Source of the DNA: Bispira polyomma
Lineage: Eukaryota
Assembly: GCA_965649765.1 (NCBI GenBank)
Contig: OZ287754.1
Span: forward strand, 23,746,001 to 23,810,000
Reading direction: 5' to 3'
DNA: 64,000 nucleotides
This document shows, piece after piece, positions 1-64,000 of the stretch. The notes beneath the pieces are model-generated. The model was not told the DNA's origin and did not search any database. It saw only the letters and a list, made by a program, of their open reading frames with translations. Position 1 is the first letter of the stretch; each line of letters begins with the position of its first letter. A program made the position numbers and the translations under genes.

Positions 1-503
1 TACGAAAAATGAAATAAAAATAATATAAGGAAATAGTAAAAAGTGCTGTCCTAAACCTTCGAAAAAAAACAACATAATCTTCGATATAAACATCTCGATA
101 AAAAGTACCAATATAGAGTACCACAGTAGACTCCTAAAACAACCACCACTTGCTATCAGCAATGAACCAAACTCATTTTATTGGTTGTATTTATGTCTAT
201 GTTTTAAAGTGTAGTGAAAGCAGACATGTATAATATAAGGCCCTGTGAAATATCATTTACAGTAATATATATGTAATATATTATGCAAGCTCTGGTGTGC
301 TCTGGAAAAATAAAAATGTCAAGCATGCCTGTTATTGTGCATCTCACTAAATCATATGAAATTAGATTAGTTCATTTATTTGAATTGTACTTTACACAAA
401 ACTGAATGACTTGATAGCATTTGTATGAAGCTGATGTATTAAGAGAAATAAATGTTTACACTGGGTTGTGCTTTAAATACATTTATTGAAACTCCTATTT
501 CAG

Positions 504-3235
504 GTCTTATGTCAAGACTTCTTTGCAAAACCTACTTGTCAAATCATCAACCACTGTGTAAATATTCTAACCAAATTAGAATGATCAGTGTGGTTGAACT
601 AGTTCTACAGGATTCTATGTTCTACGTCAACAACTGTACATCCAATTCAATGGAATACCTGGAAACTCTGAATACTTTAGATATATTAGCAATATGCCAA
701 AGACCGGATTTAATGTTTGGCAAATTTACATTTGATTTTGACAAAATCTACATCAATAGATCTTCAATAAGATGGGAAATAACCAGCAAAAATGATGATC
801 AAATAGGTCTAAAGTCTTCACAAGAAAATTTCAATGATTTTCCACGTATCTTCCACATGACATATGTATGCAAGACAGATTCGAAGTTTGAAGTGATTCC
901 AATGAAAAGTGATGCAACTGTACAAACGTCGGACATGGTGTATATTGAAAGCCATACTGGATTGTTTCAAAATTGGAGCACAGGTGTTTATGATGAACCA
1001 AGAAATAACATAAGTGTTAAATCGTTCATGCATTATTACAACTACAGCGGCTAGTAGGTTTTATATTGGGGGACCAGGAACATTGTTTGAAACAGCACCT
1101 CCTGATAAAAATTCCAAAATTGTAATAAAACCCAGTAAAGGCGATACTGAGTATCATATATATCCTGGTGTAATCAGAAACTTACAAAGGATTTACATCA
1201 ATACTGGTACAGATGAAGAAAGCTTCAGTGTGCAGTACACAAATGATGCCAATTATGTTGATGTAGCAGTACATTTTATATTACCAGTCAGTGGTAAGTA
1301 CATTGCAATATGGTGCATCATTTTAAAATAAGCTAAATTAATGCTACACATTATTTAAATATGAATATTAAGTATAACAATTAGTGATATACAGTGAAAT
1401 TTATTTATATTGTCCAGAACAATATCATAGACACTTGTTGTTACACACAGGGAGTTGAACAATGGGTGAACCTTGTTATTCTCTAATATTAGTTGTAGAA
1501 CAAAAGGTAGGTACATTACAAGTAAAGTGTGGTGAAGCACAACCAACAAAGAGTACAACAAAGTCATCCTCGAGTTCTCCACATGCTTCAACTTCAACAC
1601 AAACAGTAGAGACAACCACAGAAACATTCACAACTTCAGTAACCAGAACTGCCAAGTTACAGTCCAATACATTATGCATGGGCTCAACTACATCTGCATC
1701 AACTATAGCAACAGAGTCAACTATTCTATCATCAACTTCTACACCAATGACAGGAATCTCTTTATCTTCTACAAAAGAATCTAATTCTGATAATCAGCAA
1801 CAAGTTACTACTTCTGGTATGTGTTTGGTGGAAGTATTTTTACATATTGAAAATTTAGTCTCTCTTGGACTGTCGGTTGAGGAATTGGTTTGGTGATTGG
1901 AAGGTCTCTAATTCGACTCCTGTCAATGATGGGATACATCCTTGAGCAAAATATGTGGTAGGACTATCACTTTCAGAGGATGAGCTCCTAAGAAAATGAT
2001 ATATCAATGGGCCCTATGATAATGTTAAAAAAAATAATAATAATAAAAAGGGGTAATATATTGATAACACATTGAAAACAATCTTCAATGAATTATTTCT
2101 AGTAAAATAAGGGACAGCTCTGAACTTGGTGAACCTTACATGTGACATCACCATTGAACTATATTTTGGTACATTTAGGAAAAAACACTGATAATATCAT
2201 TATACCAAATATATTACAAGGTCCAAAGTCTGTAAATAATGATATAGAAATTTTACAATGGAGCTTCATAGTATTATACGTCAAAAGTGTTTTGGGCTTT
2301 TCACAAAGCCAAAAAGTAGGTAGCTTCTGTGGAGCTAAACATGTTGTCCTAATAGCTTTCAATCTGTATCAGGTACAACAACAGCTATTGCAGCGAGTGT
2401 AGTTGTGACCATCATTGCCATTACTGTTACAGCGGTACTGTATTTCATTAGGCGGTAAGTACAAATATCCATACTTTGCTTATTATGAATATTCCACTCC
2501 TTATCCACAAAAATTATGTTATTGTTTAAACATAAAACAACAGAACTTCACTTAGCATATTAAAATAATTGTAATATAATATAAACTAATGCATATATAT
2601 ACAGCTTTTCTTAGCTTAATATGGAACTCCGATGCGATTCCTAAATGTCCGCGAAAGTGAAATATTGTTCACAAATGATTTCATTTATACAGGAAGAGAA
2701 AAGCAGCCAGGCAGTAAGAGACATATACTCCAAGTCATCCCTCTTTAGAACATAATTATGAAAATATGCCTCACCTTAACATGTCAAAGCAAACAGATCG
2801 CACAATAGAAGCCAGCAACAATGGTGTAATAAGTGTTAAATCTGAAGAAACAGGAATTTATGATACAGCAGAACCAACCGAAGAAAGTGGACATGGTACA
2901 AATAAACAAATGGAGGGTGATGTTACAAGGCAAGATAAAACCATGATCAAACAAGAATATATTAATACAATAGCAGCTAAACAAGCTAAACCGGAAGGCA
3001 GTTTCAATGTTCAAAATACATCCGGAATATACCTGAATGTTGATCAGTCATTGAGTCCAAAAAACAATGAATACGCTGCTTTCTTCGAATTCAAGTGAAA
3101 ATGAATACGCTGCATTACAGGTCGCACAAACCACAGGGAATGCCACCTCGCTGGTGGGAATGTCCAAGAAAACAACATATACGAGAATGGAAGTATGGTA
3201 CCGCATGTGGAAGTTTTACACGGACAATGAATAAA
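504..3235 (+). pseudogene. Disabled type I transmembrane receptor gene (unknown ectodomain, Ser/Thr stalk, TM, Tyr-motif tail); exons ~504-1293, 1418 (or 1499)-1816, 2373-2454, 2693-~3235
   Basis: Phase-compatible GT-AG junctions: tttcag|504, 1293|gtaagt, tgtccag|1418, 1816|gtatgt, tatcag|2373, 2454|gtaagt, atacag|2693. TM exon reads GTTTAIAASVVVTIIAITVTAVLYFIRR. Lesions: frameshift near 1050 (ORF 452-1054 hands over to 1014-1331), TGA 1456-1458 (only if the 1418 acceptor is used), TAA 2715-2717, frameshift near 3081. AATAAA at ~3230. Confidence 0.75.
2373..2454 (+). other. Transmembrane-helix exon of the + strand receptor pseudogene
   Basis: Hydrophobic stretch of ~22 aa followed by RR|KRK stop-transfer; canonical ag/gt boundaries, phase 1 to phase 2. 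Confidence 0.75.
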
Positions 3236-25149: not shown

Positions 25150-25960
25150 AGGGTGGAGGGGGTTGTGGGTAGGGGAAGAGGGATATGGGACAAGGGACAG
25201 GGAAGGGGGGGATGAGGTTTGGGTAGGGATGGGGACAGGGGGGGATGGGAACAGGGACAGGGGTGGGGATGGGTTTTAGGTGGGGATGGGGACAGGGGTT
25301 GGAATAGGGTTTGAGTGGGGATAGGGACAGGGGAGGGGACGGGGTTTGGGTGGGGATGGGTACAGGGGAGGGGATGGGGTTTGGATGAGGATAGGGACAA
25401 GGGTGGGGATGGGGTTTGTGTGGGGATGGGGTTTGGGTGAGGATGGGGACAAGGGAGGGGATGGGAACCGAGGTGTGGATGGGGACAGGGGAGGGGATGG
25501 GGTTTGAGTGGGGATGGGGTTTGGGTGGGGATGGGTCAGGGGAGGGGATGGGGATAGGGGTGGGGATAGGGATAGGGGTGGGGATGAGGACTGGGGAGGG
25601 AATGGGGTTTGGGTGGGGATGGGGACAATGGAGGGGATGGGGTTTGGGTAGGGATGGGGGATAGGGGATGGGGACAGGGGAGGGGATGTGGTTTGGGTGG
25701 CGATGGGGACAAGGGAGGGGATGGGGTTTGGGTAGGGATGGGGGTTGGGCGGGGATGGGGACATGGGAGGGGATGGGATTTGGGTAGGGATGGGGACAAG
25801 GGAGGGGATGGGGGTTGGGCAGGGATGGGGGCAGGGGAGGGGATGGGGGTTGGGCGGGGATGGGACCAGGGGAGGGGATGGGGGTTTGAGTGGGGATGGG
25901 GCTAGGGTGGCCGAGTGAGGGGGGAGGGGGATAGGGAGGGGATTGGGTCTTGAGGGGGTT
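25150..25960 (+). repeat. G-rich minisatellite/low-complexity tract (GGGGAT/GGGGAC/GGGTTT units) with G-quadruplex potential
   Basis: About 800 bp of G3-G5 runs separated by 1-3 nt loops. Confidence 0.9.
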
Positions 25961-28254
25961 TGGAGGGTTTCACACTGGGGGCAGTGAGCAGGAGTTGCAT
26001 ATATCCTGATGTACATCTGGGGTCCAATCTCTGTAGTCGGACATTGGGTTTTACAAGGTGAGCGATTACCAAATGTACCCATAGAAATATAAACCCGATG
26101 ATGGCAACCCATCCCCATGAATTTTAATAAAGTCTCATTTAAGATATTGCAAGATACTATTGTAAACTGGTAGGTAAAACAAAACGAGTCCAACTCAAAT
26201 TAAACAGGAAGTGAAAACCACTAAATTGTCATACATGGAAACACAATTAAAGCAACAGTTTTTGTCCAAATTAGAAAAGATTTGCAGAGACAAGTCATCA
26301 AGTTACATAGGCACATAGGGGTGGATAACAAGATGAGAATGTAGTGGCCTTCAGGCCGCATAATTTTCTGACTGAAGACACAGACCAAACCAACAGACAA
26401 ATATGAGAATAAACTCTGGGCCTAAACTCTGTCTTCAGACGAAATTGATAAAAAAAAAATTTGCAAGTCCACCATTGCTGTTAAAAGTACAGTGTCTAGT
26501 TTGTTCTATTTTTGCTCACACTATGAAAACGGCAAACTAAAAAATAAACGCTGCAAAAATCTTACCATAAGCAGAGTACTTTTGCAAAGGCAATTTCCTT
26601 ATAATCCCAACTAGTAATGAATTAAATAATGATTTAAGAGATGATCCGATTTCTGAAAAAGGGGCCATTTTGAGAGACGGTTTAATTTTAGAGATGAAGA
26701 CGTTTAATGACTAGGGCTACCAATGCCCCTGTGTCCCTTGTAGTTTTTAAGGCAGTTTTACCATATACTTTACATTCATACATACAGTTTCAAAATATCA
26801 ACCTTTAACACATTAAGGTCACCTTAAGAACCAATAACTAGTCATTAGGTCAGGTAATTTTTAGGAGAACATATAATAGGTGCTCTGACAGCACAAGAAA
26901 AATGTCCTAAGTTAATGTTACCTTAGACTAAGGATTAAGCTTAAGGAAATGTATGTGATAATATGTGATATTTATGTATTTTATGGAGTGTTATAAAATA
27001 AACAACCCAAACATAAAAATGGGCCACTACATAAATACATTTATGATGGTGAAGTATTGTCACAGAAAAATACAGTTCCATCTGTATTTTAAATGTTATA
27101 ACAAGGTTTAGATGGGTTTGAGCTAAAATAAAACATGCCATCATTGAAACTATTTTCCTGGCTTTTTATTACTCCAGGGTAATTTCACTACCTACGTGTA
27201 TAGTATATTTGTGTACAAATGGCTCTCCTGACTATTGCTTTAATAGCAGTGACATATTAATGTAGAACATTAGAATTCACCTGGATTTATCACTAATTAT
27301 TTCCAGAGAGGGTCACAGTGCTGGACGTTTAAAAGTGTTTTATTATTTTAAAAGTATCAATTCTCCCTAGTTTTAAGTGTTTTAATTGACCTCAGTAATA
27401 ATCACAAAATAAAATTTTGACTTAACCTTATTGGTATACATGTATATCGCTTAATAACCTTATATTGTAGTCAATCTCAAGCTGTTATCTGAGCACCTTA
27501 ACAATTCTATTATTTACGATAAATATTAAATATCAGTATAAATATTGGACCTATGTTTTTTTTAAATGTGGTATCACTGATCACCGGCAAATTAATTAGC
27601 CGTGGATTCTCAACCACATAAGAACTTACTGGTATATATTTATTAATATTTTTTGCCACACCATGTATTTCAATGGTGGTATTTTATAATTTTTATTTTT
27701 GGTTTGAGCTACTTTTAAGGGCCTTGTTATGGTTCTGAACGGCCATCGCCTTAAATACTTTAGCAACCACCTTAGCAACCACACCACAACTTCCCAATTT
27801 TTTCACAGTTGAAAGTTAGTAGCTTAGTTTAGTTAAGCTTGGGTCTAACATCACACTTTTAGCTTAGTTTATTTAAACTTGGATGTAACATCACGCTTTC
27901 ATCGCGGTTATTTTCAACGAACAGTTTATTGGTGGAGAAAATCAGAAATTAGGTTTAAGACGGTCAAGATTTCTGTTCTGCAAACCACAACTCTTCAGCA
28001 CCTTTACCACACGTGCTATGGTCGAGTTAGGAATTGTGGATTAATCATAGTATTTTGATTCAATATCTTTATTAACGAACAAGAATTCAATATAGTTTTA
28101 AACAAATTAATTTAACTAACTGCTGTGCCATAAAAGACCCAGAAATCTGTAAGTGTACACGGTAAAGACCGCTGATCTATGGCATTGGTCTCTGACGTAC
28201 TTTCCCCAACATGAAGGAAGCAGTGGGATTCAAACCACAGTAACAACCATTAAT

Positions 28255-52034: not shown

Positions 52035-52769
52035 CCCTTTCAACCCCCAGGTTGTCGGCAAAGAACCTGACGACATTTGTTACTCCCAGAACCTACGTCT
52101 GTCCGCAAGACGTCGACACCCTCCAAAAATTATTATTTTCTTTTCTTTCAATTCCTCCCATTAGGAAATTGTTAGTACAGCAGACCTCTCTTCTCAAAAA
52201 AAATTATAGTTGAGGTCATTATTGGATGGCGGAAGTAGTCTATGGTGTATGTTCTAGTGACTTCAGCTATGTGTAACCTATTGCCTTAAAATTCCCTTAG
52301 GGGCTACAAGTCATCTTTGGTACACATAGTGCCTAAGACATATAAATTTATTTATTTATTATATAAATTTTATTAGTTTGGCCTGTGAGTTGTGATCTTG
52401 ACCTTAAAATCTTGTGAGGGGGCTCGGTGGTCAAAATACTCGCCTCTACCTCTAAGGTGGGGCCGCGGTGGCCTAGTTGTTAGCAAGCATTGTTCTTCAC
52501 AATCACTGGTCTCTCACCTCTGAACGTCGTGAGTTTGAATCCCGTCGATGCCTATGTGAGAAAGGTGGTAGTTCCTTTCTGTGGGCCGCTGGTTTCAGTG
52601 CCGAACCTTGATCAACTGTATGCAGTGTTTCCTCCAGCGTTTCCAACTACCCTTCCCAATATAACCTGAACAGGTACTAGAGTGGACGTTAAATATCCAA
52701 ATTCAATTCAATTCAACTTAAAATTCCCTTCATTTCCCGGTGATAGTTTTCTCCCTGTCATGGAAAGGG
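52035..52769. mobile_element. piggyBac-like non-autonomous element (TTAA TSD) carrying a nested SINE insertion
   Basis: TTAA|CCCTTTC at 52031-52041 and GAAAGGG|TTAA at 52763-52773. Confidence 0.55.
52459..52716 (+). mobile_element. SINE family A, full length
   Basis: ggggccgcggtggcctagt head, (aattc)n tail. Confidence 0.9.
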
Positions 52770-54979: not shown

Positions 54980-55483
54980 TGTTGCATTCACACTGTCCAT
55001 GTTCTCTGTCCCCGTTCTCCCCCGTTCTCAGAACTTGAACAAACTAAGAAACTGGGCATAAACGGGGGTAGAACTGGGATGAACCCGGGCGTACATCAAG
55101 AACAGATGCTGCAGCCGGAAATTTTGAACATGTTCAAAACTTCCATGGCAGGACGGCTCTGAAAACACATCTTGAGAGAACTTGAGAAAACGGCAATGCC
55201 GGGGCATGAACGGGAGTTGAACTGCTCAGAACTTGTGTAAATGGGGCTTAAACTGCTTAGAACTTGTGTGATCTGGCCGGAACCGGAGATAACTTGAGAA
55301 AACGTAACATAACCTGGGCATAAACGGGGCTAAATGGGTCTAAAACAGGGCTAAAATGGGTTATAAACGGGAGATGCAAAATGGCCAAGTTCAGCCAAGT
55401 TCTTCAGGTCTTGAGTAAACGGCAATGCCGGGACGATGTCGGGGCGATGCCGGGGCATGAACATGGAAAATGTGAATGCCTCA
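54980..55483. mobile_element. PIF/Harbinger-like MITE (~504 bp) just downstream of the receptor stop codon
   Basis: TAA|tgttgcattcacactgtccatgttc ... gaacatggaaaatgtgaatgcctca|TAA; internal palindrome ttttgaacatgttcaaaa. Confidence 0.75.
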
Positions 55484-55593
55484 TAAGGTAGCAGTTGTCA
55501 AATATAAAAAAGACCTTATCAGGCAATATGGTAGCAGTTTTAAGGATTGTCGGTGTACCTCTTCTTAGATAAAGGTAGCAGTTTTCAAAATTG

Positions 55594-55848
55594 TCAGCAG
55601 TTTTTATAAGGATTCCAGACATTAGGATTTGGAGGTTGTTGCCCAGTTTCTTCCATTGTCTTGTATACATGTAGATAGTCCTGGTCGCCAGCGGTCTGCA
55701 AGCATTCATAGGTAGTGGGGCCTTTCTTTTCCATCTCATTCAAGTGGTCCATATTCTTGTAGATGTGGTTATCCAACTGGTTCCCATTTCTCTTCAGTGA
55801 CTCATAGGTTGTTGTTGTCACATCCTTCTTTTGTATGACGTCATTATA
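55594..55848 (-). CDS. D8C receptor terminal exon (tyrosine motifs)
   Basis: T-rich tract then gaaaag|TATAAT; 255 nt ending TGA; contains YESL, YKNM, YECL, YLHV, YKTM, YKNC. Confidence 0.8.
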   Translation of the reverse strand, partial: YNDVIQKKDVTTTTYESLKRNGNQLDNHIYKNMDHLNEMEKKGPTTYECLQTAGDQDYLHVYKTMEETGQQPPNPNVWNPYKNC

Positions 55849-58800
55849 CTTTTCAAAAAGTGACAAAAAATAAATAAAAAAAATAATAACTAAAAAATAA
55901 ATAAACAAAAATAGTTCATGCGTCGAACAACTCCTAGTCTATGGCAAATTTTACTGAATAAGGAGAAATAATGCATATATTTATATGGCTAGCTAGTTCA
56001 AAAATAGACTTATATATTTATATAAGGAGATATTTATTAATTGTGGTCCCCCGGTGGTCTAGGGGTTAGGGGGTTGGTCTGATGATCAGAAGGAAATGGG
56101 AACGACTAGTTTTATTGATGGGATAACATCCTTTGAGCAAGATGTGCACACACGTTTGCCTAGTGGCTTGGATGACCACTTAAAATGGGGGTCCTCTCTT
56201 AGTAGGTCCTTCCCCAGTGGCAGGCTAACGATTCCTTGGGGACGTTAATAAATGGCAATATACAAGTCTCTCTCTTCAGTTAGAAGAATGACAGTGACTA
56301 AGGTAGTTGACTGTTGCAGTTAGGAAAGGGTAAATTAGTGCTCTGAATACCAGATGAAGGTAGATAAATGCGCTGAGTATAAATCTGATTCCAATTACAA
56401 TTGTATAGAATCTGGAACTGATCTATATAACCTTGTACCCACCTCGGGCAGAGGTTCTGCAAGATGTTTCTCCCCAAATAAAAATCTAATTTAGATTGAA
56501 ACTTGGATGATGCTTTGCTCAATGGGACATTACTTTCGGGATTTGAATTTATTAAAATTTTTAAGCCAGTGCTTTTTTTTTTTTTTTTTTTTGGGGGGGG
56601 GGGGGATTTAGTGCTGGAGCACTGTAAATCACGGACAAACGACAAGTACCTGACAAACTTTTGCATGTGAAGAAGGAAGAAGGAAGGGATTCGATCTCCA
56701 GAGGTGAGAGACCAGTGATTTTAAAGCAGACGCTTATAACCACTAGGCCACTGCGGGCCCCCATTACTTTAAGATAAGAAACCCTTATATATTATTGAAG
56801 CATTTATACAGTGCCCTATTGCTATATCATCCTCTCGGGGATAGTCATGCCACATAGCCTGGTTCATCAACACAAGGCAATGATGCATTTACATCTTGCC
56901 CAAGGATGTCATTTCACCAATGAACCTAGTGGCATTGGCAGGGGTCAAACTAGGGACATATTTTCCAATCTCCAGACCAAATTTATGGTCACCTGGTTAT
57001 AACATTTAAACAATATTTATATGATAAGACTCCTAACAAAATTAACGTATCTTAAACCAGCCGGCCAGTTTTGACCTACGAGACATTTAGGATATAGTCA
57101 TTTGAATTTGAAGGATAAACTAGTTATAGTAATTTTTATAACATAATTAAGTGATTGTGTTCCAAGAGTGCACAGTATATTGTTCAAAGCCTTTCATTAT
57201 GCTAGTTTTAGACATACATGTATGTACTTCTGCCACAGACATGACACCATTACCTGCTTTAGTTTACCCATGCCTTAATCACTTGTTTTTTTAATTGTGC
57301 CAAGATTGTCTAGAAATCTTAATGGGAGTTAAGTCTGGTTTGATGCCATTCCAAACTTACCAAAACAGCCATGTTGTTGTTGTTATATTATTACCTGGAA
57401 ATCATCTATATTGTGGTAGACGCCTTCTTCTGCATTGTCTTTCCCTGGCAAGTAATCATTGGAAACCACAGACAGTGTAGGTCTTACTGAATGCTGCTTA
57501 TCTGTCTTTGGTAGGGAACCCGGATGGCTGAGGTGACCAAAAACAATAAGACACTTCACCTGTATCTTAGATTCTGATTAGTTAGAAAGCATGGCAAATA
57601 CATCATGGATCCTCTTATCAAGAGTTGTCTTATAAAAAACGTTGATATTGCCACTATATATACTGAGGCCTACTTGGCACCCCCTACAAATATTAATCTG
57701 ACACTCCCTTGGACGAGTTTATTATTTCCAGCCAATCCATGAAGACCTTACATATTATTTCTAAAAAAAGTAGCCTCTTATTTGGTGGCGCTATCTTCAC
57801 AATGAAAACAACGGCATAGCCTGACAAAAACTACTAACAAAACTTCTGTCAGTTATATGAATGGTACTACACTTCAAAACTACACTTTAGAAGATACCTT
57901 GCATCAAATAAGGCGCATTATAAAAATACATCACAATACGTAATAATTGTTCCAGGCTACTAATTAGATCTGTGTAATAAATGTATTCCAACTATGGTAA
58001 GTTAATATTTATATGTGTGTTAGATTACATATACCATTATAAACATTGTGTACAGCAATGAATAGGATAGTAATAAGAAGGTTCAAGTTTAGCCACATTA
58101 CTCCTGTTTTAAAAAAAACCCTCCACTGGCTGCCTATTGAATATAAGAACAATATGCTATGTTAGTCTATAAATATCTCAACTCAGGTCTCCCTCAGTAT
58201 TTTAGTCCTTACTTGTCTCCCTATACAAGGCGTAGTAATGTCCCTACCTTTGTACCATCAGTTCACAAGTTAAAAAGACATTTTAACAATAGTTTCTCAT
58301 ATGATGCTCCTAAGCTGTGGAATTGTCTGCCTCATGATACTTGCACTGCCTCCTCACTTGCCTGTTTTAGGAAAAAGCTCAAAACCTACCTATTTAGCAA
58401 GGCTTTTCCACCTTACCTTTTTCTGGTGTCTCTGTGGTCACAACCCCTGTACGTCCGATGGCTATATGAAATTGTCAAATGATTTTGTGTCTCATGCGCC
58501 TTAGAATCTGCTAAGACAGAGATAAGCACTATAAAAGTTAGATTAGATTAGATAGATTACAGCAAGAGGTAAACCCTTACCCCTCTCCCACCTCCTTGTG
58601 GGGCTTCTTCCTGCAGCACCAGATAGCAACTCCTGCTATCACTACCAGTATCAACACCACTATAACAGCCACCAGAGCTGCAATGATTACAGTTGTGTTG
58701 TCGGTTTTACCATCATTCTCATCTTCACCTGATACAAATTGACCATCAGAATCTGGGATTTGTTTGGAAATGGTAGAGCTTTGCACAATGACCCCAGCAA

Positions 58801-61800
58801 GACTAGTTCCTTCGAACGACACGCTCACGGATGATTCATGTATGGATGTTACATATGTAGCTTGGGTTGATGCTTCTGCTGTTGGAGTAGTTACTGGTTC
58901 AGTGAGTTGCTCTGTTGTAGAAGTTATGCTTTTATCTTCTTCAGTATGTATGGATGTTATATCTGTGGATTGGGTTGATGATTCTATTGTCTTGCTACCT
59001 TGTGGAATGTTTACTGAGCAGTATGCCATCTCACAGGAAGGCGGCGGCTTTAATTGGTACACATATGACAGTGTGGTGGGCATACTAGAGTTTACACACA
59101 GCTTCACCTGAATAGTCTCTGTCCAGAAGTGACAGTCTCCAAAATAGCTCCCAGACACAGTGGCCGTGACTGGTCCAGGCTCCTCAACTAAAATAGATGG
59201 TTATGGAGTTAATTTAGGGATCAGAAGGCCTTGGGTTCAACTGCCAGTTGGGGAGTTGACTTGGTGATTGCAAGGTTCCAGGTTCGACTCCTGCTAAATG
59301 TCACCTAGGTTAATCGGTGGGATAAAAAGCTTGGGCAAGATGTCAACACGTCATTGCCTACTGCTATCAACCCAGGTTATGTTGTAGGACACTTGATTGG
59401 TTGATTGATTCAGTTGTTGCACTTTAGAAGATGCCTGGCATCAGTAAGGCATTTTAAAAATCCAAAATACTATACAATTTAGATTAACCTTTGGGTTTAA
59501 TGCCCCTTTCAAGTTTAAACACGTCTTATGTTGTATGTTATTCTATGTTCCTAAACCACATATACAACAGCTACAGTTTGTCAGTCAGGAGCATTTCAAA
59601 GTCTACACAAGGAGTCAAAAATGCAAATACTAAAAAAAAGATATCCAATGGCAGCCTAGGAATGCTTGGGGAGAACATTCCCTCATGGTCAAGCTAATTA
59701 TAATCAAATTAAAATCATATATATTAAATTAAAAAATGGTTTATTTTCCCTTACTAGTATGAAAGAATTCAAATGTTTTGTTACTCTGTAAAATTGTTAT
59801 ATTTTATGTTTTGTAACAATGTGCACAATCTACCCTGCGAGGTCTAGTGTTTTGTAAAGTCCCTGAGAGAAGGTTGCAACATCTCCCCTCTGCGTAGGGT
59901 GTCTAAAAAATGTTTTTAATAGGAGAAATTAACCTTTTTTATAAATATATATATATATAACAACAGCAAAAGTAATTTAGGAGAGGGATATAAATAAATA
60001 TTTAAATGACTGTAGATTCAGGGGTAGTTTTCTATTCTAGAATACTGCCCTTCCTCTATTTGAGGACATAAAAAGACTTAAAAATAAGTGACATACAGTA
60101 TCAATATGCAGCTATCATCTGTATCAAAGGATGCAGATGATAGCTGTACAACAAACATACTATAATATCCTAGTGTATGTGTGCGCATTCATAACTTGTG
60201 CTACCGGGATTTCCACTTTAGCTCAACTGTTAAGCGTTTGTCTTGTGAGCGACAGGTCCACAGATTGAAACATGCCCGAGCTGTATAATTTCATTTCATT
60301 CTTGCACAATACTGCACATCAACTTACTTGTGGGGTGTTGACCATCCAAGTACAGTGTTGCCATGGTGCCGCAGTGGAAAACAGGGGTACATGACTCCGC
60401 CATCCGGTCACCTGGTGCATGCTCCAGGCTGTACCAATAACCTGAAGGCAGGTAAAACAGGAGTGGTTGAAATGTGTATTCTGTGTCTGAAGGGCCATAG
60501 TTATCAAATGTCTTAAACTCACAATCATCTCAGAAATATATCCCGCCATATCTTTGCATGAAAATGATGTCTAAATTGTAAAGACATATTTGAGTTCCTT
60601 GCTGCTGGAATTTCTTATAAATGAATAGTAAAATGTCCAGGTTACTGATCACATATAATATGGAAAATCTATACATGTGGTTTGAGTTTAAGTATAAGTT
60701 TACGACCTTTGATAAATACGGGCCCTGGACAAACAAGGGTATAAAACCTGATGGTATGTACTTTCTTCCAGAACACTGGAAATACATAAGACAAATTTGA
60801 ATTAAGTAGGTATTGGAAATAATACATAAACATCAACCAATCTCTGGTATCTGGTTTATGTTTTGGTGTGCTTTAGCATCCGCTAGGCTCAATCCTGTAC
60901 ATGTCACAACTATTGATGTTACTTACCAGGGACAATCCTGTACACGTCACAACTATTTATATTACATACCAGGGACAATCCTATACATGTCACAACTATT
61001 GGTATTACATACCAAGGACAATCCTGCACACATCACAACTGATAATATTACATACCAGGGACAATCCTTAGCACGTCAAAACTATTAATATTACAAACCA
61101 TGGACAATCCTATACACGTCACAACTAATAATATTACATACCAGGGACAATCCTGTACACGTCACAACTATTAATATTACATACCAAGGACAATCCTGTA
61201 CATGTCACAATTATTGATATTACATATCAGGGACAATCCTGTACACGTCACAACTATTGATATTACATACCAGGGACAATCCTGCACACGTCACAACTGA
61301 TAATATTACATACCAGGGACAATCCTTTACACGTCACAACTATTGGTATTACATACCAGGGATAATGCTGTACACGTCACAATTATTAATATTACATACC
61401 AGGGACAATCCTGTACACGTTACAACTATTAATATTACAAACACCAGGGACAATCCTGTACACGTCAAAACTATTAATATTACATACCAGGGACAATCCT
61501 GTACATGTCACAATTATTGATATTACATATCAGGGACAATCCTGTACACGTCACAACTATTGGTATTACATACCAGGGATAATCCTGTACACATCACAAT
61601 TATTAATATTACATATGAGGGACAATCCTGTACACGTCACAACTACTTATATTACATACCAGGGACAATCCTTTACACGTCACAACTATTTATATTACAT
61701 ACCAGGGTCAATCCTTTACACGTCACAACTATTTATATTACATACCAGGGTCAATCCTGTACACGTCACAACTATTTATATTACATACCAGGGTCAATCC

Positions 61801-62446
61801 TTTACATGTCACAACTATTGGTATTACATACCAGGGCCAATCCTATACATGTCACAACTATTGGTATTACATACCAGGGACAATCCTGTACACGTCACAA
61901 CTATTAATATTACATACCAGGGATAATCCTATACACGTCACAACTATTGATATTACATACCAGGGACAATCCTGTACACGTCACAACTAATAATATTACA
62001 TTCCAGGGACAATCGTGTACACGTCTCAACTATTGTTATGACATACCAGGGATAATGCTGTACACGTCACAATTATTGATATTACATACCAGGGACAATC
62101 CTGTACATATTACAACTATTAATATTACAAACACCAGGGACAATCCTGTATACGTCACAACTATTAATATTACATACCAGGGACAATCCTATACTCGTCA
62201 CAACTATTAATATTACATACCAGGGACAATCCTATACATGTCACAACTATTAATGTTACATACCAGGGACAATCCTATACATGTCACAGCTATTAATATT
62301 ACATACCAGGGACATACCAGGGATAATCCTGTGCGCGTCACAGAGGTAAGAGTCCCCTGACTCATCATTTTCCACTGATCTTCTGGCATCACTGATGTTA
62401 ATGGCTTCTGAGCAAGGATCTGAGGCTGTCACTATGGATAGAGCAC
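55594..62446 (-). CDS. Multi-exon gene (5' partial): UMOD/GP2/OIT3-like D8C (D10C) domain single-pass receptor with mucin stalk and tyrosine-motif tail, ~410 aa visible; join 62446-62318, 60441-60328, 59187-58581, 57527-57395, 55848-55594
   Basis: All five exons have AG/GT ends and compatible phases (1,1,2,0) with no stops. The spliced product reads DPC..ISDARRSV..LCD..GYWY..G.RM.ESC...HCGT....LDGQHP...V...C....IQVKLC....YVYQL.PP.SCEMAYC, the D8C pattern. Confidence 0.88.
57395..57527 (-). CDS. D8C receptor exon D (cytoplasmic)
   Basis: cacctcag|CCATCCG...TTCCAG|gtaata; 133 nt; HPGSLPKTDKQHSVRPTLSVVSNDYLPGKDNAEEGVYHNIDDFQ. Confidence 0.75.
58070..58560 (+). mobile_element. L2/CR1-clade LINE 3' end, intronic and antisense to the receptor gene
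   Basis: HITPVL..LHWLPI..., LVYKYL, FSYDAPKLWNCLP, FRKKLKTYLFSKAF motifs, then a 3' UTR and (gatta)n tail. Confidence 0.85.
58581..59187 (-). CDS. D8C receptor exon C (D8C C-terminal part, Ser/Thr/Glu stalk, TM, CCRKK)
   Basis: attttag|TTGAGGAG...GAGGG|gtaagg; 607 nt; TM VIIAALVAVIVVLILVVIAGVAIW. Confidence 0.9.
60328..60441 (-). CDS. D8C receptor exon B (not in the ORF-track frame)
   Basis: cttcag|GTTATTGG...CCCACAA|gtaagt; 114 nt; GYWYSLEHAPGDRMAESCTPVFHCGTMATLYLDGQHPT. Confidence 0.9.
60891..62342. repeat. 43-bp minisatellite (~33 copies) derived from the exon A/intron junction
   Basis: Unit cataccagggacaatcctgtacacgtcacaactattaatatta; its reverse complement is TGTGACGTGTACAGGATTGTCCCTG|GTATGT..., matching the exon end TGTGACGCGCACAGGATTATCCCTG|GTATGT. 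Confidence 0.95.
62318..62446 (-). CDS. D8C receptor exon A (end of signal peptide, D8C N-terminal part)
   Basis: ggcaacag|GTGCT...ATCCCTG|gtatgt; 129 nt; GALSIVTASDPCSEAINISDARRSVENDESGDSYLCDAHRIIP. Confidence 0.85.
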
Positions 62447-64000
62447 CTGTTGCCATAGAAACAAGAACACATTGGCATTGTTTGTTATTTATGTATTATA
62501 TCATATTCACATTGTTTGTATTGTTGTACTGACAAAATATTGAATAAAAGTGTTACTTTCAAGACAGAGAAATACAAAGAAAAAGCAATCTTTCCCAGAA
62601 TCCCTGGTACATCAGTCCCATTGTACACATTCAAACAATACGAAACACATGAGAGGCTAAATGTATTCTTGCAGTAATAGGACATTACATTTCTTACATT
62701 TAGACCATAATATACTCTTGAGAACAAATTTGTGGTAGCATTTTTAATATAACATGTTTGTTTTTTTGTCTTGTTATATTGTCTATGTATTGATGTAATT
62801 GGTCTGTTTGTAAAATTGTCACCTATATTGTCCATTTGTTTATATGTGTATGTACTGTGTAATGTAAAAAAAAGCAACGATTAAAAACAACAAAAAAACA
62901 TAAAACAAATGAGAAGCTACAATATTGTAAACAACAGACATAACTTTGCTCTCCTGTAAACTTGTTAAGAGGCTTGCTACTGCTGGGATTCATTCCACGG
63001 ACTTTGCCGATCTTAAGATTAATAGTCCAGTACACTATCAGTTAAGCTAAAGCTGGGGAACAATTGCCAAACTAGGAAGGGGGAGAAGGAGGAGAGGAGG
63101 GGGGAGAGGAGGGGAGAGGGAAAAAAAGGAAGAGAAAAAAAAAAGAAAAAGGGAATATCCCCACTTTCCAGAATCTGGAATTCTTCCCCATAACTTAATT
63201 TTTTCTTGCTTATTACATGTTTTTCTACAGTAAATATATTGCAGTAGCTTTCCTCTAATTTGATTGGCCAATAAGTATATATTTTACTTCTCACTCATTG
63301 GCTTAAAATCTGTCAATAACAATTGGGCACTACATTTGATGATAGGGACAATGCTTTAAACGCCAAATTCAAGTTATTTCAACACTTCTTAAGTCCTGAC
63401 ACCTGTTTTGTACTATTATTCTTATTAAATATATAAATTTAAATTTAATGCAGGAAAACATTCCTCAACATTCTATTGAGCAAGTAAGAGACATGTCATA
63501 AATCTATTTGAAATTTATGATATTATTTTGGTTTTTCATACTTTCCAACAAGGAAGGTTACGTATTTGACACATGATAAAACCTCACAATGTATTTCAAT
63601 AGATTTTAGATTTTCTATGTGCACAGTCATTTAGAGAAATACAATTGGGTATCAAACTTTGTGAAATATTTCTTTACAATTGAACAAACACAGGTTTTTT
63701 GGCCTAAATAAATCAAGCACTCTTTTTAATGTAGAGTTTAATTTTGTGGAAACAAATAGGGTTTTAAAAAAATAGACTTTGCAGGCAAAATTTGTAATTG
63801 TAGAAAATCTTTTCTAAAACATTTTCTAAATTTTGAAAAGTGACATCATCATTATTAACAAGAGACAATCTCCCATTAAATACGTCTACAGTCAATTATA
63901 TCATTAGGTAGCCCAAGGTTTAAACCTAGTTTTTGGTTTGTATTTTTAATGTTAATGGTTTTGCTTTTATAGGGCCACAATGGATGACCAGGCATCCTCT

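Follow-up and report, generated by a model that had tools for sequence, protein, structure and literature searches.

What does a uromodulin-type domain do when the gene that encodes it goes on to encode a membrane-spanning helix and a long tail rich in tyrosine motifs? The question is raised by a locus of Bispira polyomma (assembly GCA_965649765.1, contig OZ287754.1), which lies in a stretch of 64,000 nucleotides (positions 23,746,001 to 23,810,000, forward strand) that we call the window. Positions 55,594 to 62,446 of the window had received an initial annotation as five exons that join a D8C (also called D10C) domain to a signalling tail. To our knowledge, the function of the D10C domain itself is known only for UMOD and GP2, and the domain is known only from secreted or glycosylphosphatidylinositol (GPI)-anchored matrix or decoy proteins. 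Mutations in UMOD cause kidney disease, and both UMOD and GP2 trap bacteria that bear FimH. Our analysis indicates that the locus is a real protein-coding gene for a predicted type I membrane glycoprotein, lineage-restricted, in which a known domain appears in a new architecture: a uromodulin-type domain on a transmembrane protein with a tyrosine-motif tail. With one D10C domain on a stalk and a conserved tyrosine tail, such a protein would be a simple system in which to ask what D10C binds and whether binding reaches the cell interior. The claim is a limited one, as it covers two genomes and reads function from sequence.

Gene structure and domain identity

The window around the gene is AT-rich (35% G+C) and gene-poor. 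By reading and by script, we find five coding exons on the minus strand, all with canonical splice sites. They are given below with the parts of exon 3 (positions are those of the window, and C1 to C10 are the cysteines of the D10C domain in order).

62318-62446, minus strand: exon 1, phase 1 at both ends, acceptor cag/GT; a signal-peptide-like end (A-L-S-I-V-T-A), then S-D-P-C (C1), an R-R-S motif and Y-L-C-D (C2)
60328-60441, minus strand: exon 2, the D10C core, with a (G)YWY motif, C3 and C4 (H-C-G-T) and an H-P-T end
58581-59187, minus strand: exon 3, the D10C C-terminal half, stalk, predicted transmembrane segment and tail start
59012-59187, minus strand: first part of exon 3, the D10C C-terminal half with C6, C8, C9 and C10
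58691-59011, minus strand: middle of exon 3, a Ser/Thr/Glu-rich stalk of 107 residues with an NTT sequon at its end
58613-58690, minus strand: predicted transmembrane helix of exon 3 and juxtamembrane Cys-Cys
58581-58612, minus strand: end of exon 3, basic start of the predicted cytoplasmic tail (R-K-K-P-H-K), donor in phase 2
57395-57527, minus strand: exon 4, a tail segment with D-Y-L-P and V-Y-H-N-I
55594-55848, minus strand: exon 5, the tail end with seven tyrosines; stop codon TGA at 55594-55596

The intron donors are, in order, GTATGT, GTAAGT, GTAAGG and GTAATA, and every acceptor consists of a pyrimidine tract and AG. Intron phases are 1, 1, 2 and 0, with split codons GGT (Gly), ATT (Ile) and GGC (Gly). 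Read from an in-frame ATG (62454-62456), the frame comprises 1248 nt, or 415 codons. Exon 3 alone is open for 207 codons and ranks third among the 8440 stop-to-stop frames of the window; this length argues that its stalk part is coding sequence, as opposed to a retained intron. The tail, exon 1, and the stalk/transmembrane part are each single-copy in the genome. The splicing scheme of the initial annotation (five phase-compatible exons that yield a D8C domain, stalk, transmembrane helix, CC-RKK and tail) is thus borne out by the splice sites and phases, and its estimates of about 100 residues for the stalk, about 135 for the tail and nine tail tyrosines compare with measured values of 107, about 139 and nine (two in exon 4 and seven in exon 5). 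Both N-glycan sequons that it listed are also present, NIS in exon 1 and NSS after KLC.

Ser and Thr make up 36% of the stalk, which is probably O-glycosylated and extended. The best 19-residue hydropathy of the transmembrane segment is 3.71, inside a 26-residue hydrophobic run that ends in CC and is followed by RKK; the basic stretch R-K-K-P-H-K after the helix is consistent with the cytoplasmic side. Weak matches to dystroglycan, MGC-24-type, adenovirus E3 CR2, RAMP and similar Pfam families were rejected, as they reflect stalk and transmembrane composition and not homology. No tRNA genes or Rfam families were found at the locus, and word searches with exons 3 and 5 gave no match. Look-alikes in the atlas (score 0.83 for exon 5 and 0.76 for exon 3) were both under the meaningful level. 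A metagenome scan returned a single weak match (38%).

The identity of the domain was tested exon by exon. Against PDB (phmmer), the top match of exon 2 is human UMOD 202-237 (E 1.9e-5), with GP2 next (E 2e-3), and that of exon 3 is human UMOD 241-289 (E 3e-3), again with GP2 next. Exon 1 gave no UMOD match in PDB, either alone or as a two-sequence profile; against a profile that we made from 36 D10C relatives, restricted to their C1-C2 segments, it scored 20.1 bits versus a best of 9.1 among 3000 shuffles. Across the three exon-wise tests the pieces are collinear on human UMOD/GP2. The Pfam family PF23283 (D8C_UMOD, which takes in UMOD, GP2, OIT3 and VWDE; gathering score 27 bits) was matched exon-wise only, by exon 2 with 16.5 bits (profile positions 11-36) and by exon 3 with 15.5 bits (55-88); the two hits are collinear, and each is below 27 bits (simple sum 32). 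Taken together, the exon-wise UMOD/GP2 matches, the collinear Pfam hits, and the exon 1 profile score uphold the UMOD/GP2-type D8C identity that had been proposed. Further family residues are in place, including D-P-C, an Arg at C1+11, C-D after C2, W-Y, C-G-T, H-P, V-Y-x-L and A-Y-C. When exon 3 was searched with HMMER against 1.84 billion representatives, 33 matches came back, of which 32 cover the D8C half only and one (P0031) covers only the stalk and transmembrane part. Pfam confirmed D8C in all 10 of the library matches that were submitted to it. The matched proteins come from fish, a frog and a coral, and carry D8C in tandem together with ZP or SRCR modules.

The disulfides of D10C are C1-C8, C2-C9, C3-C6, C4-C10 and C5-C7 (PMC8930769). 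Eight of the ten cysteines are present here (C1, C2, C3, C4, C6, C8, C9 and C10), and in the alignment to UMOD the remaining two positions, C5 (UMOD C248) and C7 (UMOD C256), are Ser and His. The two lost cysteines are the partners of one disulfide, and the loss is therefore coherent. Judged by its sequence, the domain is not broken but a coherent derived form that can still make four of its five disulfides. Library match P0002 shares this loss, and its contig (ENA ERZ22147071, locus L010), from a second, distant species, holds a collinear gene that we use as the comparison orthologue. The absence of C5 and C7 is common to both genes and, seen in two species, points to a dispensable part of the fold. 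The NSS sequon, which sits two residues after C8 in a six-residue insertion, is also conserved in both.

Identity to the orthologue is 55% in exon 1 (with the acceptor at the same place), 70% in exon 2, 60% in the D10C part of exon 3, 57% in the transmembrane helix (where the orthologue has W-C-R-K), and 34-39% in the tail exons. The stalks of the two proteins agree in length and character, although their identity is low. Splice phases are identical in the two genes, and the orthologue has a counterpart of exon 4 (phase 2 to 0) in which both tyrosines align. For the domain, dN/dS is 0.16 at a saturated dS of ~1.7. Two intact copies at this distance, with silent sites saturated, therefore argue for function. 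One difference in structure concerns exon 3. The orthologue has an extra 5.9-kb intron (L010 10239-16179), with fragments of long interspersed nuclear elements (LINEs), between the D10C exon and the stalk/transmembrane exon; near 59000 in this genome the same codon reads CAAG/GT, and the frame continues through exon 3. Either the intron is present in one species and absent from the other, or exon 3 harbours a cryptic donor here.

The 5' end needs separate treatment. The ATG at 62456 is not conserved, as the orthologue has Ile there and an in-frame TAA just upstream. An AG acceptor lies at the same position, in phase 1, in both genes, and V-T-A before S-D-P-C is kept in both species and fits a signal-peptidase site. 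Because of the nonconserved ATG, the shared phase-1 acceptor, and the V-T-A stretch, the gene model is probably incomplete at its 5' end, and lacks a short upstream exon that would encode the start codon and the first part of a signal peptide. The end coordinate first assigned to the gene, 62446, is accordingly a true exon boundary but probably not the 5' end of the gene, as it follows an AG acceptor. We infer that D10C forms the very start of the mature protein.

Such a 5' end invites the suspicion that we are dealing with an artefact of the gene model, with a relic that is silent, or with only the 3' portion of a larger gene that has further domains upstream. The start codon is not conserved, no signal-peptide exon was verified by search, and the exact protein is absent from the public collections searched. 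A search for transcript evidence listed three sequencing runs of one study, none of them recorded as RNA; they contain more than 80% of a mostly intronic stretch, which marks them as DNA. However, all exons are open, and their phases are conserved between two species with saturated silent sites. No other D8C, ZP or SRCR block, and with tblastx no conserved coding block, was found in the window plus 10 kb upstream, nor in the 4.3 kb upstream of the orthologue, and the hydrophobic A-x-S-x-V-T-A ahead of S-D-P-C resembles a signal-peptide end. We consider an artefact, relic or fragment very improbable.

The tyrosine tail and the decoy question

The seven tyrosine motifs of exon 5 are YNDV, YESL, YKNM, YECL, YLHV, YKTM and YKNC, and the exon contains an internally duplicated module, YE[SC]L-x11-YK[NT]M. 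Overall, the +3 residue is I, L, V or M for seven of the nine tail tyrosines (binomial p 0.0013). Six of the seven tail tyrosines that can be aligned to the orthologue are conserved, versus an overall identity of 37% (hypergeometric p ~0.01). L-H-V-Y-K-T-M-E is identical in both species, and the orthologue keeps YESI, YHTI and YESL. The conserved motifs, five or six in number, are spaced regularly at 10-13 residues, with Glu at +1 and acidic surroundings. Motifs of the form YE-x-L/I suit the SH2 domains of Src-family and Syk-type proteins, YxxM suits PI3K p85, and YKNM also suits Grb2.

The tail had been described as ITAM-like (immunoreceptor tyrosine-based activation motif), a description that we do not retain. 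As defined for Draper, an ITAM is YxxI/L-x6-12-YxxI/L (PMC6219719). No such pair occurs in this tail, where YHNI, YESL and YECL are separated by 18 and 28 residues. Two tyrosine pairs, YHNI-x4-YNDV and YECL-x7-YLHV, come closest; each has Val at +3 of its second tyrosine, which in YLHV is not conserved. Instead of a consensus pair, the tail carries a YxxΦ array (YE[SC]L, YKNM, YKTM). The orthologue tail does have ITAM-consensus pairs (YESI-x8-YESI and YESI-x12-YHTI), and for this reason an ITAM may have decayed in the tail considered here.

The working mode that we favour, and consider probable, is that of a cell-surface receptor made up of a D10C head, a stalk, a transmembrane helix and a tyrosine-motif tail. 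The signal peptide, its first part encoded by the upstream exon, would be removed, so that the mature protein begins with a single D10C domain lacking one disulfide. The extended stalk of ~107 residues, probably O-glycosylated, would hold this domain above the membrane, which would be crossed by one helix; the Cys-Cys that follows would probably be palmitoylated, and the ~139-residue tail, presumably disordered, would present its regular YxxΦ array to the cytoplasm. The head would engage an extracellular ligand, in an interaction that may be mediated by glycan or by protein. Src-family kinases would next phosphorylate the tyrosines of the tail, and SH2 proteins would bind there (YE[SC]L for Src-family/Syk-type, YKNM and YKTM for PI3K p85, YKNM for Grb2), and the same motifs could also drive AP-2 dependent internalisation. 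We infer the palmitoylation, the O-glycosylation and the topology, and, from established motif knowledge, these SH2 specificities.

Several points weigh against this reading. The gene was found in only two genomes, so that the conservation statistics are thin, and for the tail a relative was detected in one other species only. Candidate signal-peptide exons are present in both species, with none confirmed. The tyrosine motifs are short and are also used for sorting.

The last of these points leads to a different explanation, in which the protein is a surface glycoprotein that does not signal and its YxxΦ motifs serve only AP-2/AP-1 sorting, as in a recycling or scavenger carrier or a mucin-like coat component. 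YxxΦ is the classical adaptor-binding sorting signal, the same motifs serve AP-2, and seven of the nine tyrosines fit it; the long Ser/Thr stalk is mucin-like, and the tail does not match the ITAM consensus. On the other hand, one or two motifs suffice for sorting, whereas here five or six are conserved, with regular spacing of 10-13 residues and an acidic context of the kinase/SH2 type. Sorting and signalling are also not mutually exclusive. We regard a purely sorting role as rather unlikely, although it deserves serious consideration. We are just as reserved about the strongest form of the receptor reading, that D10C alone binds ligand as the head of a receptor for phosphotyrosine signalling or engulfment, which would be its first direct coupling to intracellular signalling; this is a tentative proposal that we would expect to fail sooner than hold. 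If the protein is indeed a signalling receptor, this would hint that ligand capture by D10C predates the vertebrate FimH decoys.

The initial annotation went further, and connected the domain with the FimH decoy of UMOD and GP2 and with the sensing of microbes. The glycan bound by FimH is at N275 in UMOD and at N65 in GP2 (D-P-C-Q-N-Y-T), in a groove between the β-hairpin and D10C (PMC8930769). The position of UMOD N275 is Gln in this protein and in the orthologue. The corresponding start of the domain reads D-P-C-S-E-A-I-N-I-S here, so that the Asn of NIS is at C1+5 versus C1+2 for GP2 N65, and the orthologue has no NIS. A β-hairpin is very probably lacking, with a small doubt left by the upstream exon: ahead of S-D-P-C, exon 1 has just seven residues, hydrophobic or small, which resemble a signal-peptide end. 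On these three grounds (Gln at N275, a nonconserved NIS, and no β-hairpin), the FimH-decoy mechanism is not supported; neither glycan sequon position is conserved.

In its full form, this proposal is of a membrane-bound UMOD/GP2-type decoy whose D10C glycan is grasped by FimH-like lectins and whose ITAM-like tail then signals, in other words a microbe-sensing immunoreceptor. The D10C homology behind it is real, the NSS sequon after C8 is conserved in both species, and the orthologue, although not this protein, has ITAM-consensus pairs. Besides the displaced sequons, however, a domain that appears to start the mature protein would have no β-hairpin groove, and this tail has no ITAM. We judge a microbe-sensing decoy receptor unlikely, and note that the earlier suggestions of microbe sensing and phosphotyrosine signalling draw on motifs only. 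The earlier observation that no ZP or EGF domain lies nearby agrees with our profile and tblastn searches of the locus. With the ZP-C profile (PF00100), matches genome-wide occur only on the genome sequences designated C8, C9 and C13 (handles for genome sequences, here and below where coordinates follow, not cysteines), with none on this chromosome. With ZP- and SRCR-bearing relatives as queries, tblastn matched nothing but the three D10C exons across the window and the 10 kb upstream of it.

Repeats and other features of the window

Intron 1 is largely occupied by a tandem array, and further repeats and open reading frames occur in the window:

60890-62314: minisatellite of intron 1, 43 bp x 33 copies, 88% matches, score 2140
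25276-26193, minus strand: open reading frame of 305 residues, no Pfam match
452-1054, plus strand: open reading frame of 200 residues, no Pfam match
1462-1896, plus strand: open reading frame of 144 residues, no Pfam match

Each unit of the minisatellite reproduces the final bases of exon 1 and the GTATGT donor of that exon. The intron consequently holds ~33 decoy donor sites, and splicing at the one near 62268 would lengthen the reading frame, in phase, by 54 nt, or 18 residues, two of them Cys. No such array is present in intron 1 of the orthologue. The other long open reading frames are possibly transposon remnants or orphan exons.

A decamer of the plus strand, GGTAGCAGTT, occurs immediately 3' of the stop codon, at 55487, 55530 and 55574, ~43-44 nt apart, and a diverged fourth copy overlaps the stop (55487-55602 in all). 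This array may be a repeat of the 3' untranslated region or an array of regulatory sites. There is no AATAAA close to the stop codon. Farther on, 55000-55470 contains degenerate short tandem repeats (22-bp and 11-bp units at 55320-55368 and 55421-55456) in a larger, G+C-richer repeated block.

The introns of both species contain LINE/reverse-transcriptase families in common (window 58080-58410; L009 upstream 64100-68150; L010 12316-13693), and an element resembling a short interspersed nuclear element is common to window 52516-52668 and L010 8898-9050. These shared fragments indicate that the two species share transposon families, despite the saturated silent sites. By HSP70 homology, the genome of this gene belongs broadly to the lophotrochozoans, in a poorly sampled group: identity is 75-78% to molluscs, a brachiopod and a nemertean, no relative was closer, and an exact look-up of two of its HSP70 proteins gave no match.

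Other D8C exons exist in this genome (C7 14.15-14.29 Mb, C7 49.85 Mb and C2 21.47 Mb); they keep the cysteine doublet and have no similar tail. Two of them, C7:49846129-49846314 and C2:21472156-21472290, are near-identical D8C paralogues with the normal doublet. At the C2 locus, D8C exons are duplicated in both orientations (L019 3071-3178 and 7866-7973), which suggests a recent inverted duplication.

Comparison with known systems

In keeping with the initial annotation, which did not recognize the architecture as described, we found no protein in the literature that combines D10C, a transmembrane helix, and a tyrosine-rich tail. Among the papers listed that name the "D8C domain", the subject appears to be vertebrate UMOD, GP2 or OIT3 throughout, and searches for invertebrate D8C gave only UMOD structure papers.

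The likeness to the D10C of human UMOD and GP2 (PDB 7P6R, 6TQK/7Q3N; PF23283) is collinear from D-P-C (C1) to A-Y-C (C10). Residues that are identical between GP2 and UMOD (D-P-C, the Arg at C1+11, C-D and W-Y) are also found here, as are C-G-T/C-x-T, H-P and V-Y-x-L. This protein differs in the loss of C5-C7, the six-residue insertion after C8, and the presence of a predicted transmembrane helix and long tail. It also lacks the β-hairpin, the EGF domain, the ZP module, the GPI signal and the FimH-glycan sequons.

The best relatives of the domain are the tandem-D8C proteins of corals, fish and frogs (e.g., Acropora palmata XP_074623711 and Oreochromis A0A669D4B1), with E-values down to 3e-21, and the N-terminal C1-C2 segment of the coral repeats is especially close to this protein. 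Unlike the gene described here, these proteins have two to nine repeats with ZP or SRCR modules, retain C5 and the C6-C7 doublet, and are without a long tail; in the coral protein, the transmembrane helix is followed by only 26 residues.

Likeness of another kind, without sequence relation, is found among receptors and adaptors. Draper, CED-1 and MEGF10 are, as this protein would be, type I invertebrate receptors whose tyrosine-rich tails act via Src- and Syk-family kinases. However, Draper has EMI/EGF repeats, a defined ITAM and NPxY, whereas the tail described here has neither an ITAM nor NPxY. In LAT/PAG-type adaptors, DAP10 and CD28, juxtamembrane Cys is likewise followed by basic residues and by a disordered tail with several SH2-docking motifs, and YKNM has the YxNM form that binds p85 and Grb2. 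These are vertebrate families with minimal or Ig ectodomains; we found no homology to them, and the likeness is at the level of motifs only. By analogy, the working principle of the predicted receptor would nevertheless resemble that of Draper-type engulfment receptors or palmitoylated transmembrane adaptors more closely than that of the decoy filaments of UMOD and GP2.

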